Assembly: GCA_977017575.1 (NCBI GenBank)
Contig: CDRNVI010000239.1
Coordinates: forward strand, 1 to 21,942
Origin: Paramoeba atlantica
Taxonomy: Eukaryota > Protista > Discosea
Length of the DNA stretch: 21,942 bases
Direction of reading: 5' to 3'
Part shown: positions 932-17,207 of the stretch, piece after piece
Position numbering within the stretch: the stretch's first letter is position 1
Layout of the letters: each line of letters opens with the position of its first letter
Made by a program: the position numbers and the translations under genes
Notes under the pieces: generated by a model
Database searches by the model: none
What the model was told of the DNA's origin: nothing
Seen by the model: only the letters and a program-made list of their open reading frames with translations

Positions 932-1076
932 AAAAAATGGATTTATAACTAATTAAACTCAACATATACAAGGAAAAAACCAAAAAAAAGTTGAGTCCTC
1001 TATGGAATAGTATGGAAATAGAGACAAGAATAAAGAACAAGAACAAAAAACAAAGAAAGAACAAACTTGGTTCAAT

Positions 1077-1108
1077 GGGGAGTTTCCAAACCAGCCAATT
1101 TAAATGGT
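1077..1108 (+). repeat. Left TIR of element A
   Basis: Aligns without gaps to B's left end (GGG.A..T...AAACCAG.CAA...AAATGGT.CC) and imperfectly to the reverse complement of 6342-6373. Confidence 0.7.
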
Positions 1109-1155
1109 TCCAAATTTGGAATAGCACAGAAAACGTTCTTTTTTGTGTTTTGTGA

Positions 1156-2091
1156 ATAGCCTTCATTCCTTGTTTGCCTTCCAACTTTTCTAAGGATTCT
1201 GTTGCTCTTTTCGTGAGTGGTTTTCAAAATTTTCAAAAAAGAAAAAATATAATAGCTTGTGGGGATGTGAGGAAACTTCAGTTCCTCCAAGAAACTCCGA
1301 ACCAGTGGAATTATGAGGGGTTTGTTCATGCTGAGAAAACTGCCAACAAGAACTATCTGGTTCAAACTTTGCTTACTCCTTCTAGAATATTTTCATCATC
1401 TTGTCCTTGCCAAAGTGGGCGAAACGCTCATAATAAATGTAAGCATGTTGCTGCATTATTGTTGAATCTCTTTTTTCTCACAAATCATTTGAATTCTCTA
1501 CTGAAGTGGATTATGAATTGAAAGAAGAAACTTGCTCACTTTTCTTGTCCTCCTGATTGGCCACTTTACCAGAAAATCAGATTTGATTTGAATTGGAATG
1601 GGATCAAAAAAGGATTCTTTGAAGACATCCCAAGGCACAATGACAAGCGACCAATTCTTATTACATCCCCTGTGGTTTCAAAGAGAAAAAAAAAACAAAA
1701 AGAGAATGGAAAAAAGAAAATAGAAGTAATAGGAAAGAAAGATGAAAAGAAAGATGAGAAAGAAAAAAAGAAAGAGAAAGAGAAAGGGAAAGATGAAAAA
1801 GAAAAAGAGAAAAAGAAAGAGGAACAGGAGGAAGGGAAAAGAAAGCAGAAAGTGAGAGGGAAAAAGAAAGCAAAAGAAAAAGGAAAGAAAAAAGAAAAAG
1901 AAAAAAAAGATAAGGAAGGAAAAGAAGACAAAGAGAGAAAAAGAAAACAACAAGAACAAAGTTTGGAAACTTCCTTTGGCCCACCAAAAAGAAAAAAATC
2001 TCCAATTGGTTACCCAGAATACTTAAAAGGTGCAAGTCAATCAGCAAAAGAAAAGTGGAGAGTTTCTCAAATTCAATTGAAAGAAAAATAA
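1156..2091 (+). pseudogene. Element A ORF2: SWIM zinc finger + Lys/Glu-rich protein (312 codons, disrupted)
   Basis: SWIM motif CPCQSGRNAHNKCKHVAALL. ORFs 1174-1521 and 1588-2091 share one frame, split by TGA at 1519-1521. The start codon is mutated to ATA at 1156 (IAFIP versus MAFVP in B). Confidence 0.85.
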
Positions 2092-2101
2092 ATATTTATT
2101 T

Positions 2102-2992
2102 TTAAATTTGTTAAATGTTGTTATTCAAAAGAAACCAATTCACAAGACCACAAGAGAACATAATCATTTTGTAAGTTCTCATTACATTAGAGCAACAGGT
2201 TGGGTTATGAAAAATTGGCCAACTTTTGATTCACTGGATTGTCCTCTCAACAACACCTTGCAAATGAGCAATCGCAGGGTCAAATTCAATATCTCACAGT
2301 TTGGAATCTTTGGCTTTCTCTCCAACTTCCTCACCTTTCTCATTCACTTCCTTTGTTTCTTCCACTGTCTTCATCACTCACACAACCCATCCATCAGGTT
2401 TTGAAGCATAAGAATATGCTTTGTCTCCTCCAATCTTTTTCTTGTACTTCTTTTCATCAACTTCTGTCTCACAGTTCAAATACTTTTGTGCAAGTTTTTC
2501 AGCCATCTTCTCATTTTCCCAGTGGGTTTTATCATGGATCAATCCTCTTTCAAATTTTTTGGAAACATATACAATCTGTCCATGAGGTGAGATAACAACA
2601 AAAAAAACAATGGCTTGAACTGAGTGCTTTCCATTCTGAAAAGTCCACGATGTGAGAGGGCACTGTGTATTGTTCACTTCAACAACCATTCCATCCACAA
2701 AATAAAACAGGGTGTTCCAAAACTTCTGGTATTTTTCTTGAGAGTAAATTTTCCATGAATTATCAATCCATTCTTTATCAAAGAGAAAGTAGATTTGCTC
2801 CTTTGCCCAGGGCAGAAGGTCATCCAAGATCTTATCAAACCATCTTGTCAGTGTTGTGTTTGATATTGTTGTGTCATTCACATAAAAAGACTTTGCAATT
2901 GTTTCCATTGGAAGGCCTGTTGAAAAAGTGAAAAAGAGTAAATCCAATAAATTTTCAGGAGTAAATTTAACTGATGGGCAATTGCTTGGCAT
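2102..2992 (-). pseudogene. Element A transposase, C-terminal half (HTH-like + DDE_Tnp_4-type catalytic domain)
   Basis: Catalytic-type motifs YFVDG (D1), GGDKAY (D2) and GVVERTIQ*IKSW (E), typical of IS5/ISL2/Harbinger transposases. In-frame stops at 2378, about 2293, about 2231 and 2111; no frameshift. Confidence 0.85.
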
Positions 2993-3024
2993 GGGCAAAT
3001 AAAAAACCAGTCAAAAAAAATGGT
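2993..3024 (+). repeat. Left TIR of element B
   Basis: GGGCAAATAAAAAACCAGTCAAAAAAAATGGT, an imperfect inverted copy of 5545-5574 whose first 8 nt match perfectly. Confidence 0.85.
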
Positions 3025-3071
3025 CCCTACTTTTAGATAAGCTTTTTTTGTTTTTTTGTTTTTGTTTGAGA

Positions 3072-3875
3072 ATGGCGTTTGTTCCTGCGATGTCTGATGC
3101 ATTTTCTGAAGACACAATCTTGCTTTATGTTGTGGGAAAGCAGAATTTCAACAGAGTCAAAGTGATGATTGCTTGTGGTGATGTTCATGATCTTCATTTC
3201 TCTGAATCAGAAGCTGGTCAATGGAACTACGAAGCATTTGTCCATGCAGAGATGGTTGCCAACAAGAATTACCTTGTTTGTGTTTCACTTGCTTGTTCTT
3301 CAATTCTGACCACAAAATGTGTTTGCAAGGCCTTCAAGAACAAGCATAACAAGTGTAAGCATGTTGCTGCTTTATTGTTGACTCTTTTTCTTCTTGCAAA
3401 ATGTCCAAACTCTCCACCGAAGTGGATCACAAATTGAAGAAGAAAGTTTGTGTCAATGAAATGTCCTTCTGATTGGGCAATTTATAAAAAAATCAAATTT
3501 GATTTGGATTGGGATGGAATTAAATGAGGATTTTTTGAGAAAGTCCCAAAACACAATGATAAAGCTCCAGTCCTTATCACTTCCCCAGAGGTAAAGAAGA
3601 GAAAGAAAAAAGATCCAGAAAAGAAACAAACAAACAAAAAAGAAAGTCAAGAAAAAAAAAGTTAGAAAAAGAAAGAATCAAAGATAAAAGAAAGGGAAGA
3701 GGAAGGGGTGGAGAAGAAGAAGAAAAGAAAAAGAGAATGTGAAAAACCCCTTCAGTTTGGGCCAACAAAAAGAAAGAGAACACCAATCTCATACCCAAAA
3801 GAATTGGAAGGAACAAGTCAATCAAAAAAAGAAGAATGGTGACTTGCTTAAGTTTTGGAAGAAGTAAAAAAATAA
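3072..3875 (+). pseudogene. Element B ORF2: SWIM zinc finger + Lys/Glu-rich protein (268 codons, disrupted)
   Basis: ATG at 3072; CVCKAFKNKHNKCKHVAALL. Collinear with A's ORF2 through FGPxKRKxxPIxYP...GxSQS. In-frame stops at 3435, 3525, 3663, 3840 and 3849. Confidence 0.85.
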
Positions 3876-3896
3876 AATCAAAAATATTATTAGTAT

Positions 3897-5454
3897 TTAA
3901 ATTTGTTTAATATTACATTTTTCAAGAAACCAATTCATCAAAGCAGCAGAAAACAAAATCATTTTGTATGTTCACATCAAGTTGTTACAATGGCTTGGTT
4001 GTTGGAATATTGGCCAGCATTTAATTTGTTGGATCGTTTGTTTGACAACACCTTGCAATCGTGCAATTGCAGGATCAAAGACAACATCCTTCAACTGAGC
4101 ATTCTTTGCCTTCTCCCCCACCTCCTCTCCTTCTTTGTCCAGATTTCAAGTTTCCTCACCAGATTTTGTAATTCTTATGCCCCACCCTTCAGGTTTGTTG
4201 ATGTAAGGATATGCTTTGTCCCCCCCAATCTCTCTCTTAAAGGTTTCCCCATTGATACAAGTTTCGTGGCTCAAATACATGTGAGTGAGTTCTTTCACCA
4301 CAGAAGCCTCATTCCAATGGGTTTTGTCATGAACTGATCCATCTTAAAGGTTGTTTGAAAGATAAACAATTCATCCACAAGGAGAAACAACAACAAAAAA
4401 CACATATGCTGGGATTGTATGTTTTCCATTTCGAATTGCACAGGAGATTAAAGGGTCACCACTATTTTGTCATTCCACCACAGTTCCATCAGCAAAATAG
4501 AAAAGGGTTTTCCAATATTGTTGATACTCATGTGTTTCACAAATTTTCCAGGAATCACAAATCCACTCTTCATCAGAAAGAAAGAAGATTTGAGATTTTG
4601 TCCATGGGAGAAGATCTTCCAATGCTCCATCAAACCAATTTATCAATGTTTTTGAACAAATCAGTTGATCATCCACATAAAATGATTTTGCAATTGTCTC
4701 AAAAGGGAGTCCTGTTGAAAATGTAAAAAAAAGTAAATCTAAAAGGAGACTTGGGGTTTTTTTTACAACTGAGGAAGTTGGATCAATTTTGAGATATCCA
4801 GTGAGTTCAGAGAAAAGCTCATTGTGGATTCTTGGATCCTTTATTCAAAACCATGATACCTTATCTTCAATCTCACTAAGGTTCAAATGAATTCCTGCTT
4901 TTTGTTTCATTAGTCTTCTTTTCATGTGGTGGAAATTTCTTTCAACTTCCATTTTCTGTTGGTCCAGAACAGAAACACGGAACTGTAATTCCTCATTTTT
5001 TTCCTCCACTTCTTCTTGCTTCTTTTCCACTTCTTCTTGCTTCTTTTTCAAATTCACAATTTCTTCTTTCAACTGGGAAACCAAATTGAGTTTTGGTCTT
5101 TGAGAAGAGACAAACTCTCAGGGGTACAGAGCCTTTTGTTTTGAGTTTCTACTGGAGATTCATGAGAAACTTTCAAATCCCTGTTTTTTTTTCAAGTGAG
5201 TTCAATGGACACAAAAGAAATTAAAATAGAGAGGCTACATTGATTTTTTTTATCCCAGGGTAGGTTCTCCTTGTGTATCGAACCACCTCCTCATGATCAT
5301 GATCATTGAAGTGATCACAACATAAATATACATGTTTGGATGGTGTTTCTTTTTGGTGGATTTGACAAAGCCATTCAAGGTCATCTCTAGGTAAGGTTTT
5401 ACTCATGTGTGTTGTCTTGACAACTTGTTCACAAAGATAACATTTCAATCCCAT
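3897..5454 (-). pseudogene. Element B THAP-DDE transposase (500 codons after splicing, disrupted)
   Basis: MGLKCYLC...W...LCCDHF (THAP-like); intron 5238-5181; coiled coil; YFADG and GGDKAY. The third catalytic Glu is mutated to Lys (GTC AAA). Eight premature stops and no frameshift. Confidence 0.85.
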
Positions 5455-5544
5455 TTTCAGAGACAAACCACAGGAAATGCACAAAAAGAAAAAACAGGCA
5501 AAAAGCTTATTTCAAATATGGGTAATAGACCCTATTATTTAAAC

Positions 5545-5574
5545 ACCTAAATTTTGGCTATTTTTCATTTGCCC
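5545..5574 (-). repeat. Right TIR of element B
   Basis: Reverse complement GGGCAAATGAAAAATAGCCAAAATTTAGGT. Confidence 0.85.
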
Positions 5575-6242
5575 ATGACAAGTCTTCCAGAGAGTTCTGC
5601 AAAAAGTTGTTGATGGAGGGCAACATTCTTTGTCCAAAACCAACAAACTTTCTCTTCAATATCACCAAGTGAGATACAAATTCCTGATTTTCTTTTTCAA
5701 ATTCTTTTTTCTTCTTCTTCTTCATCAATTCTCTTTGATTGTTCACTGTTTTGTTGTTGGAGCACACAAATCTGAAAATCTGAGTTGGTTTTGTTTCTCT
5801 CTAACTCTTGATTCTTTCTCTCTAACTCTTCAATTCTTGCTGTTAAAGAAGAAATTTGATCTCTTTCAATCTTTTTCTTCTTTGGTGGAGGTTTGTCTTG
5901 GGGGGTCAGAGACTTTTGTTTTGATGGACGAGAAAAATTTTCGAATTCCTGATGAAAAGTTTAATAATGAGAAGAAGAAGAAAGAAAGAATAACATAGTT
6001 TTTACCTCCATTTTTTTAATCCCAGGAAATATTTTCTTTTCAAATCAAAAGATGCCTTCATGGGCATTAAAATGCGTACAACAAACACAGTGAGTGGTAG
6101 AGTGAGTGGGAGAGTGAGGGACAGTTTTCGAATAGATCTTGCATAAAAACACAAAATCATTTGTTGGAATTGAAGTTATTGTATGTTGGTGGGCACTGGT
6201 TTCAAGATCACAACCACAAAGGAAACATTTTTTCATTCCCAT
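5575..6242 (-). pseudogene. Element A transposase, N-terminal half (THAP-like C2CH zinc finger + coiled coil)
   Basis: MGMKKCFLCGC...CVCCTHF. GT-AG intron 6005-5949. Collinear with B's N-terminus (FPGIKK/YPGIKK, SKQKSL/SKQKAL, IEEKVCWF/IEDKVSWF, ELSG/ELTG). Confidence 0.8.
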
Positions 6243-6341
6243 TCTGAAAATGAAGACTGAGAAAACGCACCATCTTTCACTCCAACAGCTTTCCACGGAA
6301 AAATATTATTTAAAAATAGGGGCACCCCCCCTATTTTTTTA

Positions 6342-6373
6342 AACACCCAAATTTGACTTTATGGGAATTGCCC
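6342..6373 (-). repeat. Right TIR of element A
   Basis: Ends ...AATTGCCC followed by AT. Similar to B's right end (AAACACC.AAATTT..G.CT...TTGCCC). Confidence 0.75.
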
Positions 6374-7059
6374 ATGTCTTTTATCATATGTGTCCCAAAA
6401 GCCAAAAAGAACAAAAGAAAGTTTACGCTCTTTCACCCACAAATGGGTCCAAAGAACAAAACCTCTTTTGTACAAAAAAGGGCAACAAATAATTTACAAT
6501 TATTCACAATTGGAAAACACACACAAAACAGTTCAGTGTTTCTGCTCACCAACAAAACGACAAAGTCAACAAAACCAACTATGACAACCCAACACACAGG
6601 AGCAACAAGGTTTATTAATAATAAATAAAAGCAAACCAAAACTAGTTTGAACAAAGATTCCCAAAATCAAATAACCACAAGGGGAAAAAAAGAAACAGGC
6701 AGGAAATGGGCCTTTGCACACTTCTACTCAACGAAACTGATGATCGACAAACAGTGATCAGGAAACAATATCAACATCTCCCTGAGAAGTTTCTCAAGGA
6801 AGGCAGACCTGCACCTCATTCTTCTTTTTTTCTTCCTCTTCTTCTTGTTCCTCCTCTTCTCATTCCTTTCATTCTCTTTCTTCTTCCGTCTCTTCTCTCT
6901 TCTTCTTCTCTTTTCTCTTCTTTCTCTCTTCTTCTCTGCTCAGAGAGAAAAAGTCAACACTCTCAATCCTCCTTCTCCTCTCAACCCTCTTCTCCCCTTC
7001 TTTTTCTACCAACTTCCTCTCTTCAATCAATTACCTCAAAAGATATTTTCCAATCTTTT

Positions 7060-8155: not shown

Positions 8156-8990
8156 TTATTTCAAGCTTGGTGATGATATTGAACACAACGCCTTGCTCAA
8201 CAACCCTGACCTTTTTTTCTTCTCTTTCTTCTCTTTCTTTTCCATCCCGCGGCAATTTTTTAATTGTTTGTTGATTGAGTTACTTGGGCGCAGAAATTGG
8301 TGGGCCAAATCTAACTGAACAATATCGTGGGCCCCTGCACGGCAGCCGAGACAACCCGCGAGCGCTCTTTCTTGTTCCAGTGACAAGGGGTATTGAATGT
8401 AATCAACGATCGTAGCGCTCAGCTAAAAAAAGAGAGAGAAGAAGAAAATAATCATTTAGGTGTTTGAAAAAAAAAATTGAAATTCAGCCCCAAAGTTTTG
8501 TTATTACCTGAGTGGAAAGAACCCGAAAACGATCTCCCTGCAAGATGATCATTGTTTGGCCATTCCCTGCTGGGAATTCGTAGGTAGTGTGTTTGTTTAA
8601 CCGAATAGTCCCCACTCCTCCACCCTGAGAGAACTTGCCACTCACATCTGACATTGCAAGAAGAGGGGTATCCTCCAAGACTGTGAGGGAACAGTGAATC
8701 CCAGCAGGGCCGGTGGAGTTGTCAATGGTAATCACCGATTCAGAACTGAGGAGAGGAGTCCCCCCAATGTCGGTAATATGGCCGTCATCGTTGGTGTTGG
8801 CATCCATGATATAGTAGGTGGCAATGACCAATCCGAACGTGGCGAGCAACACGAGCATGATGACGATAAAGAAGATAATCAAGAGGTTTTTCAGGTCCAC
8901 GATTTGGTTCCCACCCTCATCGATTTTCGTTTCAATCATGGTCCATGATCGACTACTCGAGTTTTTCATCGCAGATCGAGGCGATTCCAT
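8156..8990 (-). CDS. Predicted membrane-anchored protein of unknown function (exons 8990-8508 and 8422-8156; about 249 aa)
   Basis: Long hydrophobic segment LLIIFFIVIMLVLLATFGLVIATYYIM. A phase-0 GT-AG intron (8507-8423) joins two open frames. The start and 3' end are uncertain. Confidence 0.6.
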
Positions 8991-9275
8991 CTTGGAGAAA
9001 TTTTTGACCCAGAGTCTCAAACAACAAAAGATCAAGAACCAGAAAAACAACTTAAAAACCAAAAAGACCCGATGAAGATACGAACGAAAGGTGGTCTGGT
9101 AGGGACAATCCCGTTCAAAAATAGTGCGGGGGTCGGGAAAACGAGATTTCTGCGTCACAGTTTCTGACGTGGCGGCCTCTCATTGGACAATCGAGTGAAA
9201 GTTTTTCGGTAACATTTTGGAACAACGCCAATTTTTTTGTTTTTTTTGTTTTTGCACACCACTGAACCACCGAAG
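8991..9275. promoter_or_regulatory. Putative bidirectional promoter
   Basis: 285 bp between divergent ATGs at 8990 (-) and 9276 (+). CpG-rich, with inverted CGTCA-N7-TGACG (CRE-like half sites, 9153-9169) and an ATTGG/CCAAT-like box near 9182. Confidence 0.4.
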
Positions 9276-10514
9276 ATGGCCAATCTCGTTTTCTCGCTCT
9301 TCCTTCTTCCCTTCCTCCTTTTCTTTCGTTCATCTACTTGTTATGTTTGCGGGACTGATTACTCAGGAGAAACATTGCGCATGGTAGGTCCAGACCAATA
9401 CATCTGTATGTTTTCCTCCTATAGTTTTTTAAACCAACAAGCCTATTACGGTGTTCCTTTCACCCAGTATCAAGCTGACCGGAACGCTATCGAGTTCATC
9501 TTGCCCACAGATGAATTCACTTCTGGGGCTTTCGACATTGGTGGGAGTACCCTGGCGATTACCCATTCCTTTGACTACCATTACAGTTGCCACGAATGGT
9601 CTTTTTCAATTGATTGGACAATTCCGGTTTCTAAGAGTTTTGACGATCTCATGGAACGTGCGAATGGAGAGAGCACCTTCACCTGGTACCCCACCCAAGA
9701 CGATTTAAGCCAACCTCCCTGGTCTTTCCTGCCTGCCGACCTCCGCTCGAAATTCGAAAATATGCTCTACCTTGGCTGGGCTATGAATGACGAAGGTACT
9801 GATGTAGAAAGTTGTTTATTGATCATCGAACTCCCCGAAATTCCAACATCGCTCGATCGTTACGGCATCCTTTGGGTAGACGAATCTGCGGAAGAACACC
9901 GCTTAGCCACCAATCTGCCAGTGGATGGGTATGGCACTCCCGACTTCACCTTCAATTTTCCTGCGGCTGTTTACACCGACCAAGGATATGAGGAGTACTC
10001 CATTCAAGCCTGTACTGGTTCCCTTCCAATCTGCTGGTGTTTTACTCCCAACCCAAGCTCCTCTTCATCCACCCCACTGATGCAACTAAGCGCATTATAC
10101 AAGAATGGAGCGATCGTCTCTGGTCAGCTCCTTCAACTCTCCGAAGCAAACACCCCTTCTTGCTACTCCAGTGTCTACATTTCGTGGAGCTACCCCACTG
10201 GGGCACGAACATATTTCCGAAAGACATCAGACTCGAGTTGCAGTAGTAATGACATTCAGGAGGACCAGACATGCGTGGGAGATCAATTCGCCAATGCCAT
10301 CAGCAGTTGCACTGAACCAGCCGATCATTACCCTATGACAGATTATCATTTTAATGATCCAGAAGCTACTTGTTGTGGGAGGTTGAGTGGAGAAACCGAG
10401 AACACTGATAGAGAACGAGTGATGAATCAACAAATGAAAGTCACTTCCATTGATGTTGATTGGGCCTCCCCAGATTGGTCCTCTTATGTGACATGGTGTT
10501 CCAGGGTTGGTTAA
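9276..10514 (+). CDS. Intronless Cys-rich secreted protein of unknown function (412 aa)
   Basis: 1239-nt single ORF. Signal-peptide-like N-terminus MANLVFSLFLLPFLLFFRSSTC; about 15 Cys; no recognisable domain. Confidence 0.8.
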   Translation: MANLVFSLFLLPFLLFFRSSTCYVCGTDYSGETLRMVGPDQYICMFSSYSFLNQQAYYGVPFTQYQADRNAIEFILPTDEFTSGAFDIGGSTLAITHSFDYHYSCHEWSFSIDWTIPVSKSFDDLMERANGESTFTWYPTQDDLSQPPWSFLPADLRSKFENMLYLGWAMNDEGTDVESCLLIIELPEIPTSLDRYGILWVDESAEEHRLATNLPVDGYGTPDFTFNFPAAVYTDQGYEEYSIQACTGSLPICWCFTPNPSSSSSTPLMQLSALYKNGAIVSGQLLQLSEANTPSCYSSVYISWSYPTGARTYFRKTSDSSCSSNDIQEDQTCVGDQFANAISSCTEPADHYPMTDYHFNDPEATCCGRLSGETENTDRERVMNQQMKVTSIDVDWASPDWSSYVTWCSRVG

Positions 10515-16237: not shown

Positions 16238-17207
16238 ATGTCGTTGGACTTTGGAAAACAAGAAGATCTATTGGGTGTTGATGAAATCCTGATTGGGAAA
16301 CCTTCCTCACAAACCAACCCCCCCTTCCGCCCTCCTTCTTCGGGGGTTCCATCACCAACACCAACACCAACACCAACACCAACAATAACACCGACACCGA
16401 CACCAACACCAACATTAACACTAACAGAGACAGAGCGATTGATTGGAGTTCCTGACTTTAGCCAACCACCCAACTTTTGCAACCCCCCTTATCGACCCAC
16501 TGACACATGTTTCTCAACAACACCAACACCGACACCAACACCAACACCAACACCAACACCGACACCAACAGGAGCCTATCCTCATTACTCCCCATCTCCA
16601 ATCTCTCCAACTGGGGATGTGAGTTTAACAACTGGCCGAGTGGATGTTGGTTTATGTCATCAAGTGGATGCTCGGACAACCAACTGCACCACCGTTGGTG
16701 TGGATCCAACTGCAATTCACCACAAAGTGGCAATCACAAAGCACCCTGATGGAAGCAAACCAGGTATTTTTTTCTTTCCTTTCCCTCTTTTCAGGCCTTC
16801 CCTTTTTCAACTTTAAAAAAATAGGGAATGGACCATCTTACACAGCCTCATCCGGACCGATCAACAACAAGGGTGATGTTACAAAGTGCAAGACCGTCCA
16901 GGACACACTCTTCACAAGAGTGGATCTGTGCACAACCCAATCACCAGACGGAAGCACCACAAACGCGGTTGACACGGCTTACAAAGTGGGACCTATGGCT
17001 GCAGCTGTGGGTGCTGCTGTTGCTGTTGGTGGTGCAGTGGTGGTTGGTGGTCCTGCTGTTGCTACTGGGCTTGCTACTGCGGCCACAGCTTTCGCTCCAG
17101 CTTTTGGAGGGGAAAATCCACACCCAGTGGAGTTGCCTTCGAAAACTTCTTTTACTTGTCCTGAACCCACTCCTGTTTCGCTTCCTCCTCCAACTGGACT
17201 GAAATAA
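16238..17207 (+). CDS. Pro-Thr repeat protein with a C-terminal Ala/Gly/Val hydrophobic segment (exons 16238-16763 and 16825-17207; 302 aa)
   Basis: A phase-1 GT-AG intron (16764-16824) joins two long open frames. Two (PT)n tracts; segment MAAAVGAAVAVGGAVVVGGPAVATGLATAATAF. Confidence 0.75.
16352..16569 (+). repeat. Two coding hexamer tracts (CCAACA/CCGACA)n encoding PT repeats
   Basis: Tracts at about 16352-16420 and 16519-16569. Confidence 0.9.

Follow-up and report, generated by a model that had tools for sequence, protein, structure and literature searches.

Two dead PIF/Harbinger-type cut-and-paste DNA transposons lie nested beside a (CCCTAAA)n telomere in a contig of Paramoeba atlantica (GenBank assembly GCA_977017575.1, contig CDRNVI010000239.1). 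Both have been degraded by a cytosine-directed mutation that converts C to T on both strands, prefers CpG but acts in all contexts, is restricted to these elements and other repeats, and proceeds far faster than the accumulation of insertions and deletions (indels). The window analyzed is this entire contig of 21,942 nucleotides (C239), one of 248 in a 45.7-Mb assembly. The nest occupies positions 1078-6372, where element B (2990-5578) is inserted within the transposase gene of element A (~1078-6372). Judged from the mutational pattern, cytosine methylation targeted to repeats or heterochromatin and followed by deamination may be the cause, a reading to which we give about an even chance of being right.

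The direction and the spectrum of the changes can be read from sister copies of the two elements. A (1074-2004) differs from a fragment shared by two internal, duplicated or allelic stretches (contigs C137 and C170) by 46 transitions and 4 transversions; the C>T or G>A changes that lie in A number 43, against 3 in the reverse direction (P = 5e-10). The fragment is thus unmutated or nearly so and has a CpG observed/expected ratio of 0.60, although its intact state may reflect a younger age. Per site, the change in A amounts to 40% at CpG cytosines, 7-11% at other cytosines and about 1% for T>C. The comparison of B with its 96% identical sister on contig C218 is more extreme: over 2389 aligned bases, 88 transitions stand against just 1 transversion, and 4 columns are gapped. 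The two stretches C137 and C170, compared with each other, provide the baseline of about 4:1 transitions to transversions with many indels, from which the 88:1 excess departs significantly (P = 5.5e-8).

Inferred CpG sites account for 46 of the 89 differences between B and its sister. At 26 of these, CG in one copy faces TG or CA in the other, and the other 20 form ten double sites at which TG faces CA, each the two-strand decay of one ancestral CpG. At least 39 ancestral CpGs are inferred, of which B has lost at least 29 and the sister 15; as the mutation events number 56 in B and 32 in the sister, both copies have been hit. Overall, the rate of change per cytosine is about 5 to 14 times higher at CpG than elsewhere, and non-CpG cytosines in turn mutate at least 10 times more than T>C changes or transversions occur. 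The initial annotation of this region, made from the sequence alone, had described the process as CpG-specific, and this has to be given up: 42 of the 89 differences in B are non-CpG transitions, and in A only 16 of the 43 C>T events fall at CpG. The base at position -1 shows no influence (T 0.41, C 0.45, G 0.46, A 0.29), and no preference for CHG vs. CHH, TCG or CpA is seen. A runs test for strand-coordinated runs was not significant in three lineages, and clustering of the APOBEC or kataegis type was rejected on that ground. The lack of a single-strand signature fits slow decay on duplex DNA.

To place these changes in genes, the structure of the nest has to be given. Its parts, with their coordinates and strands, are:

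1-927, no strand: telomere array (CCCTAAA)n, read directly, GC skew -1.0; contig C218 opens with the same array
1073-1077: CAATG flank at the left end of A
1078-2989, plus strand: element A, left part (left end, SWIM-type ORF1 and 3′ part of the transposase), from a DDE_Tnp_4 match and translation
1156-2091, plus strand: A ORF1, SWIM-type
2096-2989, minus strand: A transposase gene, 3′ part
2990-5578, plus strand: element B, complete, sitting in the A transposase gene; borders from the C218 homology
2990-2993 and 5574-5577: CATG flanks of B
2994 (start) and 5573 (end): terminal inverted repeats of B, ~16 nt
3072-3875, plus strand: B ORF1, with SWIM match
3897-5180, minus strand: B transposase exon 2
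5181-5238: B transposase intron, GT-AG
5239-5454, minus strand: B transposase THAP exon 1, with THAP match
5579-6372, minus strand: element A, right part (5′ part of the transposase gene plus right end)
5579-5948, minus strand: start of A transposase exon 2
5949-6005: A transposase intron, GT-AG
6006-6242, minus strand: A transposase THAP exon 1
~6360-6372: right end of A
6373-6376: CATG flank at the right end of A

The homology of B to its sister (C218:5538-9296, also on a telomeric contig) stops exactly at the ends of B. Excising B together with one CATG joins 5579-6242 to 2096-2989 and restores to A a frame of 502 codons, which is collinear over its full length with the 500 codons of B at 49% amino-acid identity. 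With the exact borders of B and the restored frame of A, a model of 2.5 tandem copies was dropped for nested insertion, and what had been annotated as separate transposon copies are two nested elements instead. The sister fragment of A starts at 1074. Profile matches in the region are to the DDE_Tnp_4 transposase (PF13359), the THAP finger and the SWIM finger of Pfam. A single GT-AG intron of 57-58 nt interrupts each transposase gene after the THAP exon, at the same position in A and B. CATG, a 4-bp duplication, flanks all three insertions of the family (A, B and the sister of B on C218), except that the left side of A reads CAATG.

The elements thus resemble PIF/Harbinger in their DDE_Tnp_4 transposase, short terminal inverted repeats and second open reading frame (ORF) on the opposite strand. 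They differ in the CATG flank of 4 bp, in place of the TWA duplication of 3 bp; in a second ORF of SWIM rather than Myb/SANT type; and in a transposase with an N-terminal THAP finger and one intron. A coiled coil is a further feature of the transposases of this family. Both copies of ORF1 (1156-2091 and 3072-3875) combine the SWIM zinc finger with a long Lys/Glu-rich tract; in a Pfam scan of ORF1 the SWIM finger was matched and a Myb domain was not. The sister of B carries an insertion of 1153 bp in its THAP exon (C218:7931-9082), and the copy in the window is without it.

The genes of the elements died without loss of frame. When one GT-AG intron is allowed for in each transposase gene (5181-5238 in B, 5949-6005 in A), all four ORFs are free of frameshifts but contain 19 premature stops, of which 16 are TGA (P = 7e-6 vs. 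the one-third expectation); the earlier manual count was about 20 and about 16, likewise with no frameshifts. They are distributed as follows:

A ORF1: TGA 1519
A transposase: TGA 6047, 5699, 2380, 2296 and 2233
B ORF1: TGA 3435, 3525 and 3840; TAG 3663; TAA 3849
B transposase: TGA 5162, 5120, 4847, 4472, 4373, 4148 and 3974; TAA 4346

In the alignment of A with B, H-G-Q of A stands opposite C-G-stop of B and Q-stop of A opposite Q-Q of B, and the third catalytic residue of the transposase, E in A, is mutated to K in B. From such codon pairs and from the catalytic change, all of which are present in the alignment, the initial annotation had argued for ancestral CGN codons mutated C>T on either strand, and the sister copies now exhibit these codons directly. 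The C137/C170 fragment reads CGA at TGA 1519 of A, and codons that are TGT, CAC or CAA in A appear there as CGT, CGC or CGA. Eight of the 13 stops of B are still sense codons in its sister (five CGA, two CAA and one CAG), and two further sites have TGA in one copy and TAA in the other, amounting to a second hit. Three TGA are common to B and the sister but these need not predate the copying, since the ten TG/CA sites lead one to expect a similar number of parallel losses on the same strand, which would be invisible. The suspicion of changes beyond CpG at 1156 and 3849 was also borne out: the sisters read ATG where A has ATA (1156) and CAA where B has TAA (3849). Of the other sense codons in the C218 sister, the CAG stands at TAG 3663 and the second CAA at one TGA of B. 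The change CGA>TGA is supported as the one that accounts for most of the stops.

The composition of the window agrees with the earlier impression that CpG is scarce in the transposon zone and abundant in the neighboring genes. The observed/expected ratio of CpG is 0.15 in the elements (1074-6378), where that of TpG+CpA is 1.30, vs. 0.77 in the genes at 8280-10514. The ratio is 0.42 in the adjacent single-copy non-coding flank, which retains three times more CpG than the elements, and 0.45 in the rest of the window, for which there is no other genomic copy except of one 170-bp piece. CpG depletion with an excess of TpG and CpA is thus confined to repeats, as is characteristic of decay through deamination of 5-methylcytosine (5mC), and the sparing of unique DNA, both flank and genes, counts for targeting. 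Of the earlier proposal, that targeted CpG methylation or silencing acts faster than indels accumulate, the part on tempo and target stands: C>T on both strands outpaces indels and other substitutions, and single-copy genes keep their CpG. Methylation would be a possible agent of it.

The decay is not limited to transposons. A four-copy family of cytosolic HSP70 genes on other AT-rich contigs (C181:7025-8842; C177, C182 and C144), 95-97% identical over the HSP70 part, shows 42-46 transitions vs. 3-4 transversions, and the copy on C181 has three TGA at invariant Arg residues, plus R>H and E>K changes. The pattern in this family is the same, and C>T decay is therefore general for the repeated DNA of this organism, a cellular gene family included.

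These results show the following course of events. After insertion, elements A and B were degraded by a process acting on cytosines, with C>T arising on both strands of double-stranded DNA and most often at CpG. CGA thereby turned into TGA (or CAA), and CAA or CAG into TAA or TAG, so that the genes died without frameshifts. The likeliest cause would be repressive methylation of cytosines directed at mobile DNA or heterochromatin, with a high density at CpG and a lower one in other contexts, and the last step the deamination of the methylated bases. Such methylation would have parallels among Amoebozoa and Heterolobosea. The amoebozoan Acanthamoeba castellanii, which has DNMT1 and DNMT3, carries CpG 5mC on repeats and in H3K9-marked regions, and Naegleria gruberi has 5mC in all contexts; in both, the marks are on repeats, transposons and silent heterochromatic DNA, with genes spared, as here (PMC12344493). 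Methylation in all contexts, as described for Naegleria, would explain the non-CpG C>T changes (PMC12344493). The likeness extends to methylated repeats of vertebrates and plants, in which CpG decays to TpG or CpA on both strands, leaving low CpG, an excess of TpG+CpA and CGA>TGA nonsense codons. The present case is set apart in that cytosines outside CpG, too, change at least 10 times faster than the remaining bases, and that indels and further substitutions hardly occur.

Several points weigh against methylation followed by deamination. About half of the changes are at non-CpG sites. In Acanthamoeba only CpG is methylated, and DNA transposons show no general enrichment for 5mC (PMC12344493). 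With 12 to 88 transitions per transversion, the spectra come closer to fungal RIP (repeat-induced point mutation) than to the usual decay of methylated repeats, and a mutational outcome such as 88:1 does not appear in the portion of the report on Acanthamoeba and Naegleria that was covered (PMC12344493). Finally, the 45.7-Mb assembly gave no candidate for a C5 methyltransferase (profiles PF00145 and TIGR00675) and, in its entirety, no SRA domain (PF02182); both blanks are weak.

Why they are weak follows from the make-up of the assembly, which is a mixture of two eukaryotic contig sets plus a bacterial-looking contig (C233, with IF2 and TruB and 55% GC). Contigs up to about C136 have 43-53% GC, CpG observed/expected near 1, TpA at about 0.7-0.9 and intronless genes that are often arrayed in tandem and present as two near-identical copies. 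They include JBP1/JBP2-sized Tet_JBP genes, and these contigs are kinetoplastid-like. Contigs from C137 upward, the window included, form the AT-rich set, with 33-41% GC, CpG at 0.2-0.65 and TpA at 0.2-0.5; their genes have introns and their telomeres are TTTAGGG. Among the telomere matches, the first listed is on C138, and no TTAGGG arrays are present in the assembly. Profiles for Tet_JBP (PF12851) and for cytidine/dCMP deaminases (PF00383) match the kinetoplastid-like contigs only and nothing on the AT-rich set. On the AT-rich contigs the same method found no PF00383 gene and one true GTP_EFTU gene, EF2 on C186, and the only HSP70-like gene outside repeats on these contigs (C156) is broken up into exons of about 25-130 residues. 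To our knowledge, tRNA adenosine deaminases of the PF00383 fold are universal in eukaryotes, as are GTP_EFTU genes. Since the method misses universal housekeeping genes on these contigs, its failure to find a methyltransferase, which the initial annotation had named as a refuting outcome, means little either way, and to read the profile blanks as absence of the enzymes is unsafe. The AT-rich set looks like a partial, repeat-rich remnant, or its genes are too broken up by introns for profile searches in six frames, or both apply.

The two contig sets also differ in their transposons. The kinetoplastid-like contigs C2-C100 have more than 90 DDE_Tnp_4 matches, mostly open frames of 330-400 residues without stops and with CpG observed/expected near 1, an unexpected load of Harbinger-type genes for a kinetoplastid. 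Elements A and B show no nucleotide similarity to the numerous DDE_Tnp_4 genes of contigs C1-C100, so the two sets represent different genomes rather than compartments of one.

How else could such a pattern arise? RIP of fungi has CpA as its target in Neurospora. A RIP-like active defence, here preferring CpG and in a non-fungal protist, would have an enzyme recognize repeated DNA and deaminate its cytosines, or methylate and then deaminate them, in bursts. The near-pure C>T/G>A spectra with indels nearly absent speak for it (88:1, 46:4 and 42-46:3-4, practically transitions only), as do the stops without frameshifts, the mutation of both B and its sister, the sparing of unique flanks, and the inclusion of duplicated host-type genes, the HSP70 family, besides transposons. 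The near-pure transitions in repeated DNA, the stops without frameshifts and the hits on duplicated cellular genes are features of fungal RIP and of the RIP-like process in the Pucciniomycotina (PMC3318451; PMC12543289), and this basidiomycete form is CpG-biased, its target including CpG through TCG hypermutation (PMC3318451). However, a homology-triggered process is expected to have a reciprocal outcome, whereas the C137/C170 fragment, which may be younger, is nearly untouched and its partner A took 43 changes. As this repeat fragment sits unmutated at an internal locus, targeting by locus or chromatin is favored over a reciprocal action triggered by homology. The fixed target of RIP is also missing, with no preference for TCG or CpA, and the telomeres here are TTTAGGG. 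Reports place RIP signatures in fungi alone, chiefly in ascomycetes (PMC12543289), and no RID or DIM-2-type gene was found among the C5-methyltransferase profile results in the assembly, again a weak blank. A defence of the RIP kind is the main rival, though one that we regard as rather doubtful. Its variant without DNMT-type enzymes in an amoeba-type protist, in which an unrecognized enzyme would actively convert C to T in repeats or heterochromatin, whatever the context but fastest at CpG, would place such a defence outside fungi and appears unlikely.

The remaining explanations fare worse. The genome is AT-rich and CpG-poor even outside the elements (0.42-0.45 in the non-genic stretches of the window), which counts for ordinary neutral decay of pseudogenes with an AT-biased spectrum and no targeting. 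But such decay should resemble C137 vs. C170, with about 4:1 and frequent indels, rather than 88:1 and 46:4; nor does it account for the asymmetry of direction (43:3) or for the threefold CpG of the adjacent non-coding flank, and we find it improbable. Editing of single-stranded transposition intermediates by an APOBEC-like enzyme, or a base-calling artefact on modified DNA, would give C>T changes only, as observed, and subtelomeric DNA can carry modified bases. Against editing, the strands are hit equally, with neither strand-coordinated runs nor a -1 context, the elements are of the cut-and-paste DNA type and a cellular gene family is affected as well. Against an artefact, the long A-rich ORFs are free of frameshifts, which points to good assembly quality, and errors do not take the form of TG/CA double sites. 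Either of these two sources is quite improbable. Lastly, TGA could be a sense codon (e.g., for Arg) and the elements intact: opposite TGA the other copy has Arg, Lys or Gln, one TGA is common to A and B, and three TGA occupy invariant Arg positions in one HSP70 gene. This is refuted by the close sisters, which differ as TGA vs. CGA and carry numerous harmful amino-acid replacements by C>T (R>C, R>H, R>Q), and it is further opposed by the loss of the start codon, the E>K change at the catalytic residue, the TAA and TAG stops, and the TGA that has turned into TAA in the sister. Within the same contig set, EF2 and other HSP70 genes are free of in-frame TGA. Reassignment of the codon has next to no probability.

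Cytosine-directed mutational killing of mobile DNA is known from fungi, as RIP, and from plants and animals, as a by-product of methylation. With a clean, polarized case from an amoeba-type genome, a branch that has received little study is added, and the question arises of which enzyme acts, as none of the usual ones is visible. What the window contributes is ancestry at the level of codons, the structure of a nested insertion, the exclusion of codon reassignment and a caveat on enzyme absence. For annotation, in-frame TGA in the repeats of this genome should be read as decay, not as a change of code, and statements of enzyme absence from this assembly are not reliable, as the AT-rich set looks partial and repeat-rich.

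Beyond the nest, the window has two subtelomeric genes that retain CpG and served as the contrast to the elements (the 0.77 given above); they are single-copy, with no Pfam match and no other copy in the genome:

8484-9158, minus strand: orphan gene for a membrane-type or anchored protein
9276-10514, plus strand: orphan gene for a Cys-rich protein with a signal peptide

Further in, 12-nt repeats of the ACACCA/ACACCG type at 16330-16580 encode Thr-Pro runs in an ORF (16238-16816) with no Pfam match. TpA is strongly depleted throughout 931-21942 (observed/expected 0.3-0.35) and is not raised in the mutated elements; the same depletion is found on all AT-rich contigs.

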